From Hormiphora californensis (lineage: Eukaryota > Animalia > Ctenophora), in assembly GCA_020137815.1 (NCBI GenBank), contig CM035351.1:9672001-9736000 (forward strand): a stretch of DNA of 64,000 bases. The letters are read 5' to 3'. Positions 4,452-14,803 of the stretch are shown in pieces. Below the pieces are notes generated by a model, which was given only the letters and a program-made list of their open reading frames with translations, was not told where the DNA came from and did no database searches. Positions within the stretch are counted from its first letter, which is position 1; each line of letters opens with the position of its first letter. Made by a program: the position numbers and the translations under genes.

Positions 4452-7400
4452 ATGAGCCTGATGTGATCAGTACAAATGTGTACAAGATAAAGAGGGATAC
4501 AAGATAAAGAGGGATAGAAGATGCTACCAAAGAAGTGGGATGATGTAGTTAAGTTGTGGAATGTGGCACCAAACAAACCCATCCTTTGTCAAGGTACTGT
4601 TCCGACTTGGAATCCAACTTGTTATTATAAACGTACTAGTTACTAGTTACTAACAACTCTACTACGTTGCTCCGGCGGAGTGGCGGGTGTGCCAGGGCAT
4701 CCTTATTAGCTGTCAGGCCAATGCTCTGACCACAGTTCTCGTGAAAATAGGGTCAGGCCAATGCTCTGACAGCTTCTAAGGGTGTTCAGTGCGGCCGTTG
4801 CTACCTTCGCAAACCTCTTCTACCACAGGAGTTACTGGGAGGGTATGGGCCAGGTAAAATACAGAGCTACATGACCAAGGAGATACTGAAGTTCCTAGTG
4901 GGTCAAGTGAAGAAGGGAGAAAATGTTGAGGATGCTGTTGCTATTGTGACTCCTGGTAAGTAGAGAGGAAGGTAACAAGATGTGTGACCCTGGTAAGTAG
5001 GGAGGAAGGTAACAAGATGTGTGACCCTGGTAAGTAGGGAGGAAGGTAACAAGATGTGTGAGCCTGGTAAGTAGGGAGGAAGGTAACAAGATGTGTGACC
5101 CTGGTAAGTAGGGAGGAAGGTAACAAGATGTGTGACCCCAACTATTTCACCAGGTTGTTACTGTCATGTCGGATGATACGGGAGTCATGGATTATCTAAC
5201 AAAGCTAGCACCTCACTTCATGGTGTCTATAGATACAGAAACTCATCTCGTTGCCATGGGTACTGCACTTTACCCCCCTGTAAAATCAGCTGGTCCCAAT
5301 AAAGCTAACAACAACATTGTAACCTCTCTGTTGCGTGCCGTTGCCAAATTGAAGCCGGTGAGTGACTGAAGAACTTTGATACATGTAACATACATTGTAA
5401 GTAACATGAATGTAACATTGTTAACATTGCTATTTAATATCACCAGGACCCGCTGAAATCATGAGTTAAAAGTAAGGGCGTTCATGTTGACACTCCAGTA
5501 CCTTCCACTGTGTGTTGAATGTAAAGCATTCTCCTCTGTACCGGTGAATGCTGGGGTGATACTGAGAAACATGGCTCCCGAACAATACACTCAGTATCAC
5601 GGACAACTCTGGGATTGTGTTGACTTGGTGTCTACAGACAGGCGATCATACCAGGCTACCAGACATTTTATTTCCCCTTCTCTCTGTCGGTAAGGAAACA
5701 GGAATCTATTATGACAGTCCAGGGAGACATTGTTAACATTTCTCCCTCCCAGGTATGGAGCGGTTAGACCAAGACAGGGTCTCAAGAGTGCTCCAATCAT
5801 ACACAGATACCCTTTCAAATCACTCACTCCGCAAACTGTTTGCTCTGGTTGCACATATTACTGCTGGGTTTGGTTCATGATAATCCATGGAAAGTGTCCA
5901 ATCTTGATGACATACCAGTACCTGATGGTAAGGGATAATGTTACCCACTTTTAACCTGAATACCATGAATATAATATGTTTTCAGTTGTTCTGGAGGTGT
6001 TCGATAACGACAATAAAGATGTTCTCTTTGTAGTTCTACCTGTCTGTCAGTACTTGGCTGAGCTATTCCTTCACAATGATATCCCACTACACTTCCTACC
6101 TCTTTGTGAACAGGTAAGGATTGTCATAATGTCATGGGGGTTATCTGCCCCAGTCTCCTCTCACTGTGTATCATGGGGGAGTTTAAAGTAGTGTTGAAAA
6201 AGTTTGAAACTCCTCTCACTTCACAGGTGTGCAGACTACTTCTCCGAGCCCCAAAACCAGAGACTAGATCACAGTGTGGTACTCTTCTAGCTCACATCCG
6301 TAGTTCTATTGACCCTGGAAGTATCGAGGAAGTGTTCGATAACTACACATCTCTATTACTCCTATCCATTTCCTTCTTTACCAAGTGTCGCCCTGATGCC
6401 AGGGTTATAGAGGCCTTTGTCTCTCACATTCTCAATGCTTCAAAACACGTGGAGGACGTTAGCAAGAGGATCAACCTACTAGATGTGGGTACTAAGTTGC
6501 CTGGCGAGTACCCTCAGTGTGAGGAACTCCTGGTAACGCTTTGTCGACTCCTCAGAACACAAGGGTGAGTACAGCTGGGTGAGTAATACAGCTGGGTGAG
6601 TATTATTACAGCTGGGTGAGTATTATTACAGCTGGGTGAGTATTATTACAGCTGGGTGAGTATTATTACAGCTGGGTGAGTATTATTACAGCTGGATGAG
6701 TATTATTACAGCTGGGTGAGTATTATTACAGCTGGGTGAGTATTATTACAGCTGGATGAGTATTATTACAGCTGGGTGAGTATTATTACAGCTGGGTGAG
6801 TATTATTACAGCTGGATGAGTATTATTACAGCTGGGTGAGTATTATTACAGCTGGGTGAGTATTATTACAGCTGGGTGAGTATTATTACAGCTGGGTGAG
6901 TAATACAGCTGGGTGAGTATTATTACAGCTGGGTGAGTATTATTACAGCTGGGTGAGTATTATTACAGCTGGGTGAGTATTATTACAGCTGGGTGAGTAT
7001 TATTACAGCTGGGTGAGTATTATTACAGCTGGGTGAGTATTATTACAGCTGGGTGAGTATTACAACTGCATAGTGTTTAGTGTCTGACTCCACATCTATC
7101 TCTAACCAGGCACGTGGGTGAAGCAATCTCCGTAATAACTGGAAACCACGAGAGTAGTGCAGAGCTAACTATAGAGCTGGTGTACTGCCACATAACTAAA
7201 CTAGACACCACACTCGCCATACAACTACTGGATGGGTTAGTACAGTGTATTATCAGTGTTTTTATAGTGGTGTATTACCAGCATATGGTGGTGGGTTAGT
7301 ACAGTGTATTACCAGCATATGGTTCACCCAGGAATGTTCACCTATAACTCATTCCTTGTCTCATATCAGCCTGACAACTCTCTCCCAGGATAACGAAATG

Positions 7401-10400
7401 TGATGACGTGGTGTCAGGAGTTGTCTTTGTATTACGGGCATATTGCCAACTTGTCACCTCGATTAAACAAAATCAGACAGAGTTTACCCTCCCTGAGGCT
7501 AGCCTGTTTATCATGGTGAGTCCTTACACCAGGTGTGCCCCATCAATTACACATATGTCCCCTATCGCTCATTTTCATTCCTGAATCTCGGTAGGCGATG
7601 AATGGTTATCGAAATATGACAAGTTGTAATTACAATTATTGTTTTCAGGCGGTAAGACCGATATTGTCCTGCCCTCCGTCTGAAGACTGCTTGCTCAGTA
7701 TTGTGCAGTTCCTGGCTGGATTGTATGGTTTGGATGGTATCGTGGATCAAGTGGTTAGGCACATCTCCCCTACCCCTGATAACACAACCACCATACTCGC
7801 CTCCCTCCCCTACCTCACCTCGCCCCTCCAACACACCCAGCAGCTGATAACTAGGAAGGTGGAGGGAGATAAACAGCTCCAGTGTAGACACAACATGAGC
7901 CAATCAGCACACTACTTGGAACTCCTAGATAGCAAGCTAGGTGGTGGAGAGGAAGTGTACACAGAGAGTGAGATGTGCACTACTGCAGCACTCAATGCTG
8001 CTTTCACATCCCTAAAGAGTTGGAAGAGAACTCATATGTCTAGTCGTGCCCTATTTTGGAGGAATTGTAACGTGATACCTTACCTCTTCCGGATCATATC
8101 GCGATACGTGAACCTCCTCTACTTGTGGGGTAGTGTACACGAGACCCTATCTCATCTAGAAAGGTTCTACCAACTTACTAAGTTCAGTCACTCTCCCTAC
8201 TGGATAAGAAGGTATCACCATCTCTCAGCGCTAGTAAAAATAACTTTGCAGCGGAATCCTCCTGATCTTCCTCTCTGTGTGACTACCACGACAAACTCCC
8301 GGTGCCAATATCTCCAGGAGCTACATCAGCAAGAGCGCTTTATAGCAGCAGAGAACAAAATACTAAACTCTGCCATTGAAGGATCCAAGATATATCCCGT
8401 CTTCTCATCCTCGATGTCGCCTAGAAACGTTGCACATTTAGTAACTTTGCAACTAACGTTACTATGGAAACATGGGGAACCGTCATCTGAGACAATTGCT
8501 GAATACCTTGCCCTCCTCTCTTCTCCTGTCCCACTGCCTGAGCTGGACAGGTTATCACGATCCTGGAGCGCTCTGTTAATGACATACCAAACAGCCGGTC
8601 CCACGACTAGGACGGGAAGGAAAACCCGGAGAACAGCAGCCCGTCACCCAGTGGATGTGGGGCTAGAAGCATGCCAGGGGTTACAGCCCGTCTTTGTACG
8701 GAGAGAGTTGCTGAAAAGAAAACCAGATGCGGATTGGTCTACATTGGACGATTACCACAATGCACCTTATGTCCATTCCCTGATACAGCTGGTAGGGGAT
8801 GATCCGCCTACTGAGTTTCCTGAACCCTGGACCGTGTGTAGCATTACGATGGAGAAGGATAGGGTAGTAATCGGACAGAGAACCATCAATCACGAGGTCC
8901 TATTCAAGAGAGACCTACCATTTACACTACGAACCCAGGTACATGTCTGCCCGGGGTCTGTCCCCATGACTAAAAATAATTAACATTCAGCCTGTTACTA
9001 GCTCTGACAATATTTCAGGGTGTTGGGGACACTAACACTTCTTGTATAGACGACATGCGGCAGCTACTGGTACAGAATGACAACAGTATCACAACAGTGA
9101 AGGAGAAGGCAGAGTTTTGGGGGAGGAGGTTCTCACTGGATGATTCCTTGAAAAGTCTTCTTGGGAAGGCAGAGAGGTCGGTTCTAGGGCCCTGGAAAGG
9201 CCTGTTATTGGGGGCCCCTGTCGATGACGTGAGGAAGGAGGGACTGGGGAAACCTGCTGCTAAGTTGAAGAGGGAACTGAAAAGTAAACACAAGGTAAAG
9301 TAGTATGGGTTGTTGTTCTTTGATACATTACATCATTTTGCCTTGCTCGACCCAGTCTCACAAATGTAGAGGAGGGTAAGAACACCTTTCTGATCAACAC
9401 AATATGTTTCAGGTTGATGTTACTACCTTTCTCTGCCAGTATTTACTAGAGCACTACTCAATACTTACTAAAGAGGAGGTACTGGAGTTAGTACCGGGCC
9501 TCACCCCCCTCACCCTAGAGTTGATAGAGAGCCTGTCCGCTCCTCCCCCTACCAATAGGCATCCAGTGCTTCTCTGCCTCGATGAGACATCCGATATCAT
9601 ACCCTGGGAAGCTTGCTCCGTATACAAAACACAGCCCATAAGCAGGATACCAAGTGTCTCATTTGCACTGAGTCTTAGAAAGGTAGGCAGTGTTATGATA
9701 TACAAGGAGTTTCCTTGCTCAACCTTACCCCTTTTCAAAGGGCTAAACAATGATTATCTGAATACTGGCCAATACAACCCCTAATTACTTGACATGTTCC
9801 CAGTCTGTCGGCTCTCAATGCCCGAATGGACAGACTACGTAGCATGGCAACTAATAACAAACCCTATAATTCCAGTTAAGGTCAGTTCCGGTGAAATTAA
9901 AATCTGAGGACACATTCTACATATTGGACCCACAAGAGAATCTACCTAAAACACAGGAGTTTTTTAAAGATTGGTTATCTAAGCAAGAGGGATGGAAGGG
10001 CGTTGCAAGTAAACCCCCGACAATCTCTGAGTATACTGCCGCACTAAACTCTGACTTGTTCGTGTATTTAGGACATGGATCAGGCAAAGAGTTTCTAGGA
10101 GGTACGTTTTGATGCACTGATCTAGGAGGTACGTTTTGATGCACTGATCTAGGAGGTACGTTTTGATGTACTGATCTAGGAGGTACGTTTTGATGTACTG
10201 ATCTAGGAGGTACGTTTTGATGCACTGATCTAGGAGGTACGTTTTGATGTACTGATCTAGGAGGTACGTTTTGATGTACTGATCTAGGAGGTACGTTTTG
10301 ATGTACTGATCTAGGAGGTACGTTTTGATGTACTGATCTAGGAGGTACGTTTTGATGCACTGATCTAGGAGGTACGTTTTGATGTACTGATCTAGGAGGT

Positions 10401-11590
10401 ACGTTTTGATGTACTGATCTAGGAGGTACGTTTTGATGCACTGATCTAGGAGGTACGTTTTGATGTACTGATCTAGGAGGTACGTTTTGATGTACTGATC
10501 TAGGAGGTACGTTTTGATGCACTGATCTAGGAGGTACGTTTTGATGTACTGATCTAGGAGGTACGTTTTGATGTACTGATCTAGGAGGTACGTTTTGATG
10601 CACTGATCTAGGAGGTACGTTTTGATGTACTGATCTAGGAGGTACGTTTTGATGTACTGATCTAGGAGGTACGTTTTGATGTACTGATCTAGGAGGTACG
10701 TTTTGATGTACTGATCTAGGAGGTACGTTTTGATGCACTGATCTAGGAGGTACGTTTTGATGTACTGATCTAGGAGGTACGTTTTGATGTACTGATCTAG
10801 GAGGTACGTTTTGATGCACTGATCTAGGAGGTACGTTTTGATGTACTGATCTAGGAGGTACGTTTTGATGTACTGATCTAGGAGGTACGTTTTGATGCAC
10901 TGATCTAGGAGGTACGTTTTGATGCGCTGATCTAGGAGGTACGTTTTGATGCACTGATCTAGGAGGTACGTTTTGATGTACAGATCTAGGAGGTACGTTT
11001 TGATGCACTGATCTAGGAGGTACGTTTTGATGTACTGATCTAGGAGGTACGTTTTGATGTACTGATCTAGGAGGTACGTTTTGATGTACTGATCTAGGAG
11101 GTACGTTTTGATGTACTGATCTAGGAGGTACGTTTTGATGTACTGATCTAGGAGGTACGTTTTGATGTACTGATCTAGGAGGTACGTTTTGATGTACTGA
11201 TCTATGAGGTACATCCACTATCTGATGACTGTATCAGTGATTCCTTCAGGTAAATCGGTGCAGGATCTTGGCGGGAGAGCAGTGGCCCTCCTTATGGGGT
11301 GCTGCAGCGGCAGATTGAAGAGCACTCACATGGGATACACAGGGACCGCCATGGACTATCTCTTGTCGGGTTGTCCTGCTGTCGTTGGATACCTTTGGAA
11401 TATAACCGATAGGGACTGTGATCGTTACACTAAGAAACTGTTAGATCTATGGCTGGAGAGGGGTAGTGATGTGTCCCTCCTTGCTCTGATGAATCCATCT
11501 CGAGGGGCATGTAAACTTCCCCATCTTGTCGGAGCTGCTCCTGTTTTATACGGGGTTCCAGATATTCTATGTGATAATACTGAACTTTAG
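4452..11590 (+). CDS. ESPL1: Separase (peptidase C50), about 13-14 exons; 5' end uncertain
   Basis: The C-terminal protease region is clear: FWGRRFSLD, LGPWKGLL, IPWEA, SRIPS, YILDPQENL, catalytic His (YLGHGSG), catalytic Cys (LMGCCSG), VGYLWNITDRDCD, GAAPVLYG. Approximate exons: 4829-4955, 5154-5357, ~5447-5689, 5753-5927, 5986-6113, 6227-6564, 7110-7235, 7370-7515, 7649-8938, 9019-9294, 9413-9682, 9876-10101, 11250-11590. Several N-terminal exons need 1-nt indel corrections. The start codon (4452, 4521 or 4561) is unresolved. Confidence 0.88.
4945..5139 (+). repeat. 37-bp intronic tandem repeat containing the 5' splice site, 5 copies
   Basis: Unit CCCTG|GTAAGTAGGGAGGAAGGTAACAAGATGTGTGA; GGTAAG occurs at 4955, 4992, 5029, 5066 and 5103. 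Confidence 0.95.
6563..7063 (+). repeat. 20-bp intronic tandem repeat containing the 5' splice site, about 25 copies
   Basis: Unit TATTATTACAGCTGG|GTGAG. Three copies spaced 60 bp apart carry ATGAG instead of GTGAG. Confidence 0.95.
10095..11214 (+). repeat. 27-bp intronic tandem repeat containing exon end plus 5' splice site, 41 copies plus 1 degenerate
   Basis: Unit CTAGGAG|GTACGTTTTGATG(T/C)ACTGAT. The first copy is the real exon/intron junction at 10101/10102. Confidence 0.97.
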
Positions 11591-11844
11591 AAATATATAT
11601 TTAAACATTTACCAGCTGGCATCTATTTTCTCCCCTCACGTAAACATGCTGTTTTTAGCGTCGGAAATCTGGAGGCTCACTCCAATGGGCACAAATGTGG
11701 ACAACCTCTTAGAAGGATCTATTTTTACAGGTCACACAAAGCAGCGGACAAATCCTGGATGATATTGGTGGTGGGTTGTCGTCTATGCGTGCTTAATGGG
11801 CTAACGAGCAAGATCAGAGGGAGAGAGAGGGAGGGAGGGAGAGA

Positions 11845-11912
<68 letters not shown>

Positions 11913-11913
11913 G

Positions 11914-11923
11914 TATATAAATA
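11914..11923 (+). promoter_or_regulatory. Putative TATA box of the secreted-peptide gene, just downstream of a (GT)n(GA)n tract
   Basis: TATATAAATA lies about 45 nt upstream of the ATG at 11961. Unlike neighbouring genes, this ATG has no pyrimidine-tract/AG acceptor in front of it. Confidence 0.5.
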
Positions 11924-11960
11924 AGTGATAGCTCTCTCTCCTGTCACAATCCCATACAAC

Positions 11961-13185
11961 ATGTTTCTACTAGTTTGTTTACTGATTTCTGGCAGCCACA
12001 CCGTTCCAACGAAAGGTAAAACACCCTTCAATTCTTTATTCACGTCTCTCCTGTCAATGCCATATCCCTCTCCAGGAGAGAAAATTAGCCAAATACCAAG
12101 AACGAGAGTCTACTTGTTGGTATTTGGCTAATTTTTATAACCACTACAAGCACATATTTTTTAACCGAAGTGGCAAACTGAGCTGTGCCATCATAATTTT
12201 ATTGACTTGTTTTGATAATTATGTTTTTACAGGACGGGTCAGCTTGCGGCTGGGAATTGCACAGGAGTTGGGACAATTGGAAAACTCGGAGGATTTCGCG
12301 AGCGAGGACCTGCAACACGGGTATTTTGCTGCCGATGAGGGCGAGGACCTGCAACACGGGTACTTTGCTGCCGAGGAGGGCGAGGACCTGCAACACGGGT
12401 ACTTTGCTGCCGAGGAGGGCGAGGACCTGCAACACGGGTACTTTGCTGCCGAGGAGGGCGAGGACCTGCAACACGGGTACTTTGCTGCCGGGGAGGGCGA
12501 GGACCTGCAACACGGGTACTTTGCTGCCGAGGAGGGCGAGGACCTGCAACACGGGTACTTTGCTGCCGAGGAGGGCGAGGACCTGCAACACGGGTACTTT
12601 GCTGCCGAGGAGGGCGAGGACCTGCAACACGGGTACTTTGCTGCCGGGGAGGGCGAGGACCTGCAACACGGGTACTTTGCTGCCGAGGAGGGCGAGGACC
12701 TGCAACACGGGTACTTTGCTGCCGAGGAGGGCGAGGACCTGCAACACGGGTACTTTGCTGCCGAGGAGGGCGAGGACCTGCAACACGGGTACTTTGCTGC
12801 CGAGGAGGGCGAGGACCTGCAACACGGGTACTTTGCTGCCGAGGAGGGCGAGGACCTGCAACACGGGTACTTTAACAAAGAAGATGTGAGGAAACAGAAA
12901 ATGAAAGATTACATATTCAAACACCCAAAGGTAAATGAAATCAGTAACTGCTAGACGGGGGTGAAATATACCTTATTTGAAGGGTATTTACTATTTCGGA
13001 ATTAGATCGAGGAATGAGTTTGTTTCAATTTGATCGCTATTTTCAACCCTGACAATGACAACATGACAATTAACCAACTAAACTCTGACACTCCCTTTCA
13101 GTTGACTAAAGAAAAGAAGGAATTGTGGTGGCAGAGAATCCTGAAATTGTACAACAAAAAGCCATGCAAAGCTGGGAAGTGCTGA
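11961..13185 (+). CDS. Secreted multi-copy peptide precursor, 278 aa (signal peptide, 15x EDLQHGYF, cationic C-terminal peptide)
   Basis: Exons 11961-12015 (MFLLVCLLISGSHTVPTK, phase 1), 12233-12930 (phase 0) and 13102-13185 (LTKEKKELWWQRILKLYNKKPCKAGKC*) splice in frame with canonical GT-AG, giving 837 nt. The N-terminus is hydrophobic. Confidence 0.8.
12304..12873 (+). repeat. 39-bp coding tandem repeat, 15 copies
   Basis: Unit GAGGACCTGCAACACGGGTACTTTGCTGCCGAGGAGGGC encodes EDLQHGYFAAEEG. Copy 1 has AADEG, copies 5 and 9 have AAGEG, and copy 15 is truncated after GYF. Confidence 0.97.
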
Positions 13186-14803
13186 CTGTAAACACACGAA
13201 TAGAGAGAATGTAGTTTCTTAAAATTAGCCTGTCTCAAATGCACTATTTGACTACGACTGTGAGTGTGACATTGATAATGATGAGTGACGATTCTTGTTT
13301 TGTTCAAACCCATTTTATTTTATCGGGCGGGGGTCTAGGCAAGACGATTCAGTCAGATTATGAACCCCAACTTGGAACAATGTGCTATTACTGTGTTGAT
13401 CACTTACAAACCAGAATCTGTATTACTTTGTAAATTACTAATTTTATTTGTTAATTTGAAATTCAAATGAATGGTCAAATAATGTAATTTAATTGAGTTG
13501 TATTTTCAGAAAAAGTTTTACTGAAATTGAAAGTAAAACTACAAAAAAGTATTAATATCATAACTAAATCAAACTCAAAGTTTTAGTATAAGTTGTATAG
13601 TATAACTAAAGTAAAAGTAAAACAGACAAATAAATTAATATTAATAATGATATAAATACTTTTTTGTCGATATGCCTCAGCAATTCCTCGGTTACTGACA
13701 GTTATTTCATATGTTTTGGTAATGACAGTGACGATAGCTTGTGATAGTGACACTGACCGGTCATGTCAAACAAAAATCAGTAATATAATGTACGACCTTC
13801 GTGGCGCAGCCGGGATTCCATTTTGTACGGCGCGATCAATACTGCGCGCGTAAATACCGCCGCGCAGACAAATTCAAAATCCGCGATTCATGAAAATATT
13901 GGGATCGTGAATTTTCAACCAAAAACAGCTGGGGTTCTCCGTTCTTTTTGAAAAGCGCTGCCAAGGGTTCTTTCGTTTTTTACCTCACCGTGTGGCTGCT
14001 CTGCACCGTTTTACCCATGATGTCCCTAGTGGGTTGTGTTATTTATTTTTTAGAGTCTGTTCTTTAAAGTGTGTAAGCGTGAGGATGTTTCTATTATACT
14101 TCAAACAGCAATCCGACAATAACCGGGTTCTGCGATAAAAGATATGGAAGGAACTAAGGGTGATATCTTCCTATGAAATGAACTTCCATCTTCCACTAAT
14201 TTTCTCCAAAGACAAGCAGGTTAAGTCGAACTTTAGAAAACCAGTTAGAGCTATGATGGAACAATGAACAATCCTTATTTGGAGATGAACTGCTTGTGTG
14301 ATGGGTTTAAATTTTAATCAATTGTAAATATATAACTGACCAACCCACATACTTTGTACGAATCGCTCTCCACGGAGCAATCTTTTAACTAGTAGATATA
14401 GTAGAGAATACCGGCGGCCTCTAGGGTTGAAAAACATGTAAACACGGTGGTTTGTTAATTGTTTCGGCGTCAACGCCTTCTTCAGAACTCAAATTAATTT
14501 GTTTAAAGTAGTGTTGAAAAGTTTCAAACTTATAGGTTCACTCTGTGACCAATCGTGGTGTGCGTTTATTATCTGAGACCTCGGTGTCGGCTTGTTGTTT
14601 CCTCCTAAAAAAGCTGCTATAGCTGTTAAAAAATTCCCTCGGCCCTCGGCGTACCCTTAATTGACAATACATGTCAGGCCCCATCGGCAGAAAATGTAAA
14701 ATACCTTTCCATCGTTACCAAGTATAACTACGTTGCATCTTTATTGTTAGTCAAGTGACAAGTCAAGTGATGAAAATTAACACTCATCCCCTTATTAGGT
14801 ATC

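Follow-up and report, generated by a model that had tools for sequence, protein, structure and literature searches.

A comb-jelly gene with 15 EDLQHGYF repeats as a candidate precursor of peptides cleaved at acidic sites

The 64,000-nucleotide stretch of Hormiphora californensis DNA analyzed here (contig CM035351.1 of assembly GCA_020137815.1, positions 9,672,001 to 9,736,000; hereafter the window) carries, at 11961-13185 on the plus strand, a three-exon gene whose central exon encodes a tandem array of the octapeptide EDLQHGYF. The gene model had been proposed in a first-pass annotation of this DNA, and its coordinates and reading frames all held when they were checked again against the sequence. 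Genome-wide searches covered the 110.7-Mb assembly (45 contigs), and each exon was taken by itself for homologue searches and folding. The parts of the gene are listed below by their positions in the window.

11914..11923, plus strand: TATA-like box TATATAAATA, about 47 nucleotides (nt) 5' of the ATG and directly 3' of a (GA)n microsatellite, as read from the sequence
11961..12015, plus strand: exon 1, with the ATG at 11961, encoding MFLLVCLLISGSHTVPTK and the first base of a Gly codon; signal-peptide-like in translation
12016..12232, plus strand: putative intron 1, 217 nt, GT..AG, placed by a consensus donor and acceptor in the sequence
12233..12930, plus strand: exon 2, translated as a unique N-terminal part, the repeat array and the start of a basic tail; 3' end confirmed by RNA (runs X1 and X3)
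12304..12873, plus strand: EDLQHGYF array, 14 full 39-nt units encoding EDLQHGYFAA(E/D/G)EG plus a 15th core, from Tandem Repeats Finder (TRF) and a table of the units
12874..12930, plus strand: first part of the basic tail, NKEDVRKQKMKDYIFKHPK, net charge +4; 17 of 18 comparable residues kept in the environmental relative P0001; single copy in the genome
12931..13101, plus strand: intron 2, confirmed, 171 nt, GT..AG, skipped by RNA contigs from two runs of two studies
13102..13185, plus strand: exon 3, translated as LTKEKKELWWQRILKLYNKKPCKAGKC plus stop; 27 codons, with TGA at 13183-13185
13186..13393, plus strand: 3' untranslated region (UTR), at least to 13393, covered by RNA contigs of X1 (13191-13393) and X2 (13182-13365)

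The donor after exon 1 is the consensus AAG/GTAAAA (12016), and that after exon 2 reads AAG/GTAAAT. The acceptor before exon 2 ends in tttttacag/G (12232/12233) and leads in phase 1 into GRVSLRLGIAQELGQLENSEDFAS and then the repeat; the acceptor before exon 3 ends in ccctttcag/T. Every phase-1 candidate running from an ATG to a GT between 11591 and 12232 was considered, and 11961-12015 is the only one to offer both a consensus donor and a strongly hydrophobic peptide (mean Kyte-Doolittle value of 3.65 over 8 residues). This peptide (MFLLVCLLISGSHT...) has a strongly hydrophobic core, with a mean value of 3.16 over residues 2-10, and looks like the signal peptides of proven ctenophore precursors. 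Exon 1 is probably the signal-like start of the gene, in agreement with the earlier proposal, and the TATA-like box 5' of it may act in the promoter. A (GA)46 tract with a (GT)n core (11816-11908 by TRF) lies immediately 5' of the box; (GA)n/(CT)n tracts are very common in the window, where more than 10 have TRF scores above 150. At the other end of the gene, the nearest AATAAA is at 13629.

Environmental contigs from marine metatranscriptomes (four runs, X1 to X4, from four studies), placed on positions 11250-14500, provided the RNA data. Pieces of the repeat and/or the 3' UTR are present in all four runs, including 69-nt contigs of perfect repeat in X1, X3, and X4. Contigs of X1 and X3, which belong to different studies, skip exactly 12931-13101, with GT..AG ends (cut +2), and so bear out 12930/13102, one of the two junctions proposed earlier. 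Since the contigs leave the introns, the upstream spacer, and the downstream/intergenic DNA uncovered, they come from RNA rather than from contaminating DNA, and the gene is both transcribed and spliced. The acidic frame alone runs through 12930/13102 into the 27-codon tail, and the Arg/Cys-rich plus-strand frame stops at 12889.

TRF places the array at 12302-12873, with a period of 39, 14.7 copies, 98% matches, and a score of 1116. In the codon register, it contains 15 EDLQHGYF cores and 14 full 13-residue units, EDLQHGYFAAEEG. The encoded 190 residues are built from A, D, E, F, G, H, L, Q, and Y alone (Tyr, 7.9%; His, 7.9%; Phe, about 8%; one Tyr per 13 residues), and the earlier observation that the array lacks basic residues is borne out by a count of zero Lys/Arg. 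Each core has Glu-Asp before it and Glu-Glu-Gly-Glu-Asp within two residues after it. The accompanying remark that no Gly follows Phe is literally true; however, every unit has two Gly residues, one after His and one directly before the next Glu-Asp.

The 14 full units differ by three distinct nucleotide changes only. Two are in unit 1, namely a synonymous TAC-to-TAT change within the core and GAG to GAT (Glu to Asp); the third, GAG to GGG (Glu to Gly), occurs in units 5 and 9, and its four-unit spacing suggests a higher-order duplication. Variation in the protein is limited to codon 11 of the unit (E/D/G), and the chance that two independent nonsynonymous events would both fall in the five spacer codons is about 0.15. 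The array, identical at the DNA level, appears to be young or homogenized. It is also open in all three plus-strand frames and in two minus-strand frames, so that the open frame is no evidence of coding. Because of this youth or homogenization and this openness in several frames, neither invariance nor an open frame says much by itself. The first-pass description of 15 invariant cores with variation confined to the spacer is correct for the protein but was given too much weight, both because the array is identical in DNA and because the relative described below has a core reading LQHGHF.

Minisatellites of a quality like that of the coding array also occur in introns of the upstream gene (4945-5138, 6570-7062, and 10094-11212, with periods of 37, 20, and 27 and 96-97% matches). 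Matches of exon 2 elsewhere in the genome were considered as paralogues and rejected, as they are unrelated 39-nt minisatellites that share periodicity only and have two to four open frames. Such 39-nt minisatellites lie at G000:C12:6457548-6458120 (L002), G000:C12:4327262-4327780 (L006), and G000:C4:2167185-2167727 (L007), with units including VAHELNHRSYVVS, HIQVHCTPIQEPT, and PLHHCIAHKYFLT. The genome seems rich in 39-nt (13-codon) arrays.

The charge of the product is unevenly distributed. Exon 2 has a net charge of -54 and an isoelectric point (pI) of 4.1, and the C-terminal 46 residues have a net charge of +11. Of the latter, exon 3 contributes +7; it contains the amphipathic stretch WWQRILKLYNK, with a hydrophobic moment of 0.73 that 56 of 2,000 shuffles reach, and ends in C-K-A-G-K-C (C-x4-C).

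The gene is single-copy, with the exon 2 tail and exon 3 each matching only themselves in the genome. For exon 2, a word-indexed search of 5.8 billion proteins yielded no homologue, and an exhaustive HMMER search of 1.84 billion representatives yielded 87 matches, one of which (P0001) is a true relative; all the others are unrelated repeat proteins matched through periodicity and were rejected. P0001 as a query found itself only, the exon 3 open reading frame (ORF) had no protein match, and Pfam gave exon 3 no family. JGI metagenome contigs, searched with the protein and with an exon 2 DNA word, contained no match, nor did the viral and prokaryotic genome collections. The Pfam match to LtuA (PF17446; whole-protein E-value of 3e-9) was rejected as an artifact of 11-residue matches summed over the 15 repeats, no single stretch of which passes. 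The strings QHGYF, LQHGYF, HGYFAA, and DLQHGYF are absent from the 8.4 million papers searched and from the supplements of two ctenophore neuropeptide papers. With a single environmental fragment as its sole homologue, the core thus belongs to no family described in these sources, as had been surmised.

P0001 has 88 residues, reads RLGIAQELGQLENSEDFAG-EDLQHGYFAAQEG-EDLQHGHFAAQ-DVRKQKMKDYIFNHPK, and comes from a single 677-nt ENA metagenome contig. After the tail, it continues into the intron with VNEISNC, the same as the window for 7 codons, and then diverges; because of this continuation, it is unspliced genomic DNA of a related animal. Its unique flanks differ from those of the window at 1 of 20 and 1 of 18 residues (about 95% protein identity). 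It has at least two units, and short-read assembly may have collapsed more. The reading frame and EDLQHG are kept in both of these units, one core has Tyr changed to His (LQHGHF), a spacer has Glu changed to Gln, and the P0001 array runs three codons beyond the end point seen in the window. All four amino acid differences known between units (E11D, E11G, E11Q, and Y7H) thus fall outside EDLQHG (p of about 0.08), and three of the four hit three different bases of codon 11. These patterns give a weak hint of constraint on the remaining positions of the unit.

The layout of the unit can be compared with that of ctenophore precursors known from mass spectrometry. In Bolinopsis mikado, peptides from 13 precursors have been identified by this method, and Asp/Glu residues are major cleavage sites (Hayakawa et al. 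2022; PMC9525235). Several of these peptides are amidated at a Gly that is not followed by a basic residue (PMC9525235): E.DQLKSGTFQ-NH2 derives from ...TFQ-G-LAEDD, where the Gly donor is followed by a nonbasic residue; pQGWAVKNARLRK-NH2 derives from ...LRK-G-EE-LEKR, where it is followed by an acidic one; RGWLKSSRVLNS-NH2 derives from ...LNS-G-QEE; and ...GWTG-NH2 derives from ...WTG-G-AMQEEE. Release without Lys/Arg and amidation with a nonbasic residue after Gly are therefore already documented in a comb jelly, and the claim of a new peptide system is not sustained. The same acidic sites answer in principle, for ctenophores, the puzzle of "non-convertase" release that the first-pass annotation had raised (PMC9525235). 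The EDLQHGYF family itself is undescribed, and the kind of system is already known.

Like the gene described here, the Bolinopsis TFQa, LNSa, WTGa, and FGLa precursors have a short signal or signal-like start and acid-rich spacers. Their N-terminal cleavages follow Asp/Glu, their Gly donors precede nonbasic or acidic residues, and the Gly-Glu-Asp context of the EDLQHGYF array matches LRK-G-EE; both the precursors and our gene are restricted to ctenophores. They differ in that most Bolinopsis precursors have one to three copies versus 15 here, in that the basic Cys-looped tail has no counterpart among them, and in that our array, unlike those precursors, is without any basic residue, its products being predictions only. 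The TFQa precursor contains three acid-flanked copies of (E/D)D-I-G-H-G/E-F, which resemble ED-L-Q-H-G-Y-F. Kinship with the Bolinopsis/Mnemiopsis TFQa precursor (EDIGHGFAL versus EDLQHGYFAA) was nevertheless not accepted, as the likeness is one of motif only and had no HMMER support among 1.8 billion proteins; it is kept as a lead. The DIGHGF pattern was not found in the genome studied here.

Two further genes of the same genome share this general design. At G000:C8:3842701-3842906 (L011), a small ORF (MYLVLIALSFGLVYPRSLEDAS...) has a signal-like start (MYLVLIALSFGLVYP...), six copies of WDRPGG-LSE[ED], and no basic residue; its WDRPGG copies are separated by LSEDLESS, LSEDFES, or LSEEE. At G000:C2:6751946-6752964 (L014), 2.9 Mb upstream on the contig of the window, a signal-like start is followed by 23 copies of LYYVPG with EKR[ED]ADSAG spacers, in an array with a 45-nt period, 96% DNA identity, and synonymous TAC/TAT variation in the core. 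As in the EDLQHGYF gene, a signal-like start is combined with tandem, near-identical short units in which Gly is followed by an acidic spacer, and the WDRPGG gene also resembles the EDLQHGYF array in having no basic site. The WDRPGG and LYYVPG arrays are 91-97% identical at the DNA level, so high DNA identity is normal for precursor-like genes in this genome. Their cores are unrelated to EDLQHGYF and end directly in Gly, a clear amide donor, whereas here Gly follows His or Glu-Glu. Unlike our gene, both have a single-exon coding part, as far as examined, and no cationic tail. The genome also matches the PHM copper monooxygenase domain (PF01082) over two exon-sized stretches, at G000:C4:7693098-7693349 and 7701881-7702015, 8.5 kb apart on the same strand, which presumably belong to the gene of an amidating enzyme, and it encodes proprotein-convertase P domains.

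On these comparisons, we tentatively favor, at somewhat less than an even chance, the reading that this lineage-restricted comb-jelly locus encodes a precursor of the ctenophore type, namely a secreted protein with multiple peptide copies that is cut at acidic sites. The short hydrophobic N-terminus would direct the product into the secretory pathway, and cleavage of the 15 units would take place at the Glu-Asp pair and/or the Glu-Glu run, both acidic, instead of at Lys/Arg. One of the two Gly residues in each unit might serve as an amide donor. Use of the Gly after His would give LQH-NH2 with YFAAEEGED as the spacer, first hydrophobic and then acidic (compare TFQ-G-LAEDD and WDRPG-G-LSED), and use of the Gly before Glu-Asp would give LQHGYFAAEE-NH2 (compare LRK-G-EE); a nonamidated LQHGYF or pQHGYF is a further candidate. 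Cleavage would also free the C-terminal tail, which is basic and has a Cys loop, as a product of its own. We infer secretion, cleavage, amidation, and a signaling role from the sequence features described above. The neuropeptide LQHGYF or pQHGYF that had been put forward gains from the evidence for acidic cleavage sites in ctenophores, but its ends are one choice among several: LQH-NH2 and LQHGYFAAEE-NH2 appear as possible as LQHGYF, and the sequence alone cannot choose among them. The Lys/Arg sites at each copy, usually Gly-Lys/Arg, that mark precursors of the convertase type are not found here, as the array is without Lys/Arg.

Several observations weigh against a peptide precursor. The array is as young or homogenized as the adjoining noncoding minisatellites, so that its invariance says little about constraint. 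It is without a basic residue, and its aromatic core does not stand directly before Gly, unlike the cores of most ctenophore peptides that have been proven. It would also be unusual for a product to be amidated on a C-terminal Glu or to be a tripeptide amide. The sole relative may have just two units, one of them with a changed core, and the searches described above revealed no significant similarity to any known precursor. The junction 12015/12233, by which the signal-like exon would be joined to the array, is covered by no contig in any run, in contrast to 12930/13102. The peptide products are predictions from sequence.

A more specific form of the precursor reading, which we consider unlikely, is that of a dual output. 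An acid-directed endoprotease would free about 14 small His-containing peptides (LQH-NH2, LQHGYFAAEE-NH2, or LQHGYF) together with a cationic, disulfide-looped C-terminal peptide, in keeping with an array free of Lys/Arg sites. If this were so, the 14-15 identical sites in one substrate would offer an unusually clean handle on the acid-specific processing enzyme of early-branching animals.

The most serious rival, already listed among the first-pass alternatives and in our view only somewhat unlikely, is an unprocessed, secreted, acidic repeat protein. In this case, a coding minisatellite would yield a polyanion, disordered or rich in beta structure, in which His/Tyr/Phe "stickers" recur at regular intervals; it might act in a granule matrix, in the binding of cations or metals, in adhesion, in coacervation, or in association with mineral; the cationic tail (+11) would be an interaction module, and copy number would drift freely. 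Such a protein would account for the near-identity of the units in DNA, like that of the neighboring noncoding minisatellites, in a genome that abounds in 39-nt minisatellites with several open frames. It would also fit a relative with at least 2 units versus 15 and with one core changed, the absence of basic cleavage sites, and a strongly acidic composition (pI 4.1) in which His, Tyr, and Phe each make up about 8%. A single-sequence AlphaFold model of exon 2 draws LQHGYFAA as regular strands and EEGED as turns with a predicted local distance difference test (pLDDT) score of about 70-76 (mean pLDDT for the exon, 65). This model had no match in the PDB at an E-value of 0.001 or less, however, and, as models of this kind are often made for perfect repeats, we gave it no weight as possible evidence of a fold; comparison with the ESM Atlas was uninformative (scores of 0.82 or less, to bacterial hypothetical proteins only). 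The unit layout of acidic pair, short core, Gly, and acidic run is, moreover, that of proven ctenophore precursors.

Comparison with adhesive and structural proteins also bears on this rival. Squid beak proteins with GHG-x-Y and mussel foot proteins resemble the product described here in being secreted proteins of short tandem units with regular His/Gly/Tyr/Phe and labile copy number. These proteins are basic or neutral and far richer in Gly/His or Tyr/Lys than the polyacidic product here, and the known 3,4-dihydroxyphenylalanine (DOPA)/His adhesive and beak proteins as a group are basic or Gly/His-rich, not polyacidic, which counts against an unprocessed protein of this type. The high Tyr or His/Gly content and the basic or neutral character of DOPA/His adhesive or beak-type proteins are not found in the array (Tyr, 7.9%; His, 7.9%; pI 4.1). 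Nor were colloblast candidate genes found to be enriched in low-complexity sequence (Babonis et al. 2018; PMC6278862). The unprocessed protein remains a serious rival.

The order of a signal-like start, a polyanionic region, and a cationic end is also that of a cationic, C-terminal, host-defense-type peptide precursor, an explanation that we regard as quite unlikely. The acidic array would be an anionic pro-region that neutralizes and escorts the basic tail until cleavage, and the repeat expansion would be largely neutral. Precursors of Hydra arminins and of frog skin peptides have a signal, an acidic region, and a cationic amphipathic C-terminus, and the ranid "Rana box" is a terminal, Lys-rich disulfide loop of the form C-x5-C, one residue longer than the C-x4-C loop found here. 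The hydrophobic moment of exon 3 and its C-K-A-G-K-C end agree with this explanation, as does the conservation in P0001 of the unique tail segment of exon 2 (17 of 18 residues). The charges are far from balanced, however (-54 versus +11), no canonical Lys-Arg site precedes the tail, and no relative of exon 3 was found in the genome or protein searches. Compared with the arminin and ranid precursors, the acidic region here is a 15-unit repeat with a charge five times that of the tail, and there is no homology.

It is very unlikely, in our judgment, that the gene is a transcribed ORF of recent origin with no maintained function, in which a minisatellite expanded within a small, lineage-specific transcript. 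Extreme taxonomic restriction, a young array, and a genome prone to minisatellites would all be expected of such an ORF. Its unique flanks, however, are about 95% identical in protein to those of the diverged P0001, whose intron read-through diverges after 7 codons, and the frame, which passes cleanly through three exons from a signal-like start to a Cys-paired end, also argues, together with spliced RNA in several wild samples, for a maintained gene. The weakest alternative is an animal precursor of ribosomally synthesized and post-translationally modified peptides (RiPPs) with multiple cores, in which enzymes would cross-link or modify His-x-Tyr or Tyr ahead of release; also among the first-pass proposals, it has in its favor a repeated core with His, Gly, Tyr, and Phe and nothing else, and is extremely improbable given that no modifying enzyme was noticed adjoining the gene, that there is no leader or recognition sequence, that Tyr is replaced by His in one P0001 unit, and that the acid-site precursors of ctenophores offer an ordinary explanation.

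Two groups compete for the position of sister to all other animals, and comb jellies are one of them. To our knowledge, only about a dozen comb-jelly signaling peptides have been proven, all of them from lobates, and we know of no enzyme that has been assigned to the acid-directed processing route implied by mass spectrometry. If the gene does encode a peptide precursor, it would represent a new peptide family and would add a cydippid candidate to this very short list, and it would provide a simple substrate, repeated 14-15-fold, for identifying the acid-directed processing route. If its product is instead an unprocessed protein, the gene would be an ordinary lineage-specific repeat protein gene that shows how a minisatellite-prone genome builds coding repeats.

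Two minor observations concern the RNA contigs. In the X2 contig, six substitutions and one inserted T relative to the window are packed into 17 bases of the 3' UTR (13240-13256), where X1 is identical to the window; this clustering points to a small replaced segment, from another allele or a sibling population. Finally, a 230-nt X1 contig matches the window over 54 bases only (13992-14045, with 3 mismatches) and is unlike it on both sides; it probably represents either a short dispersed repeat or some unrelated transcript.

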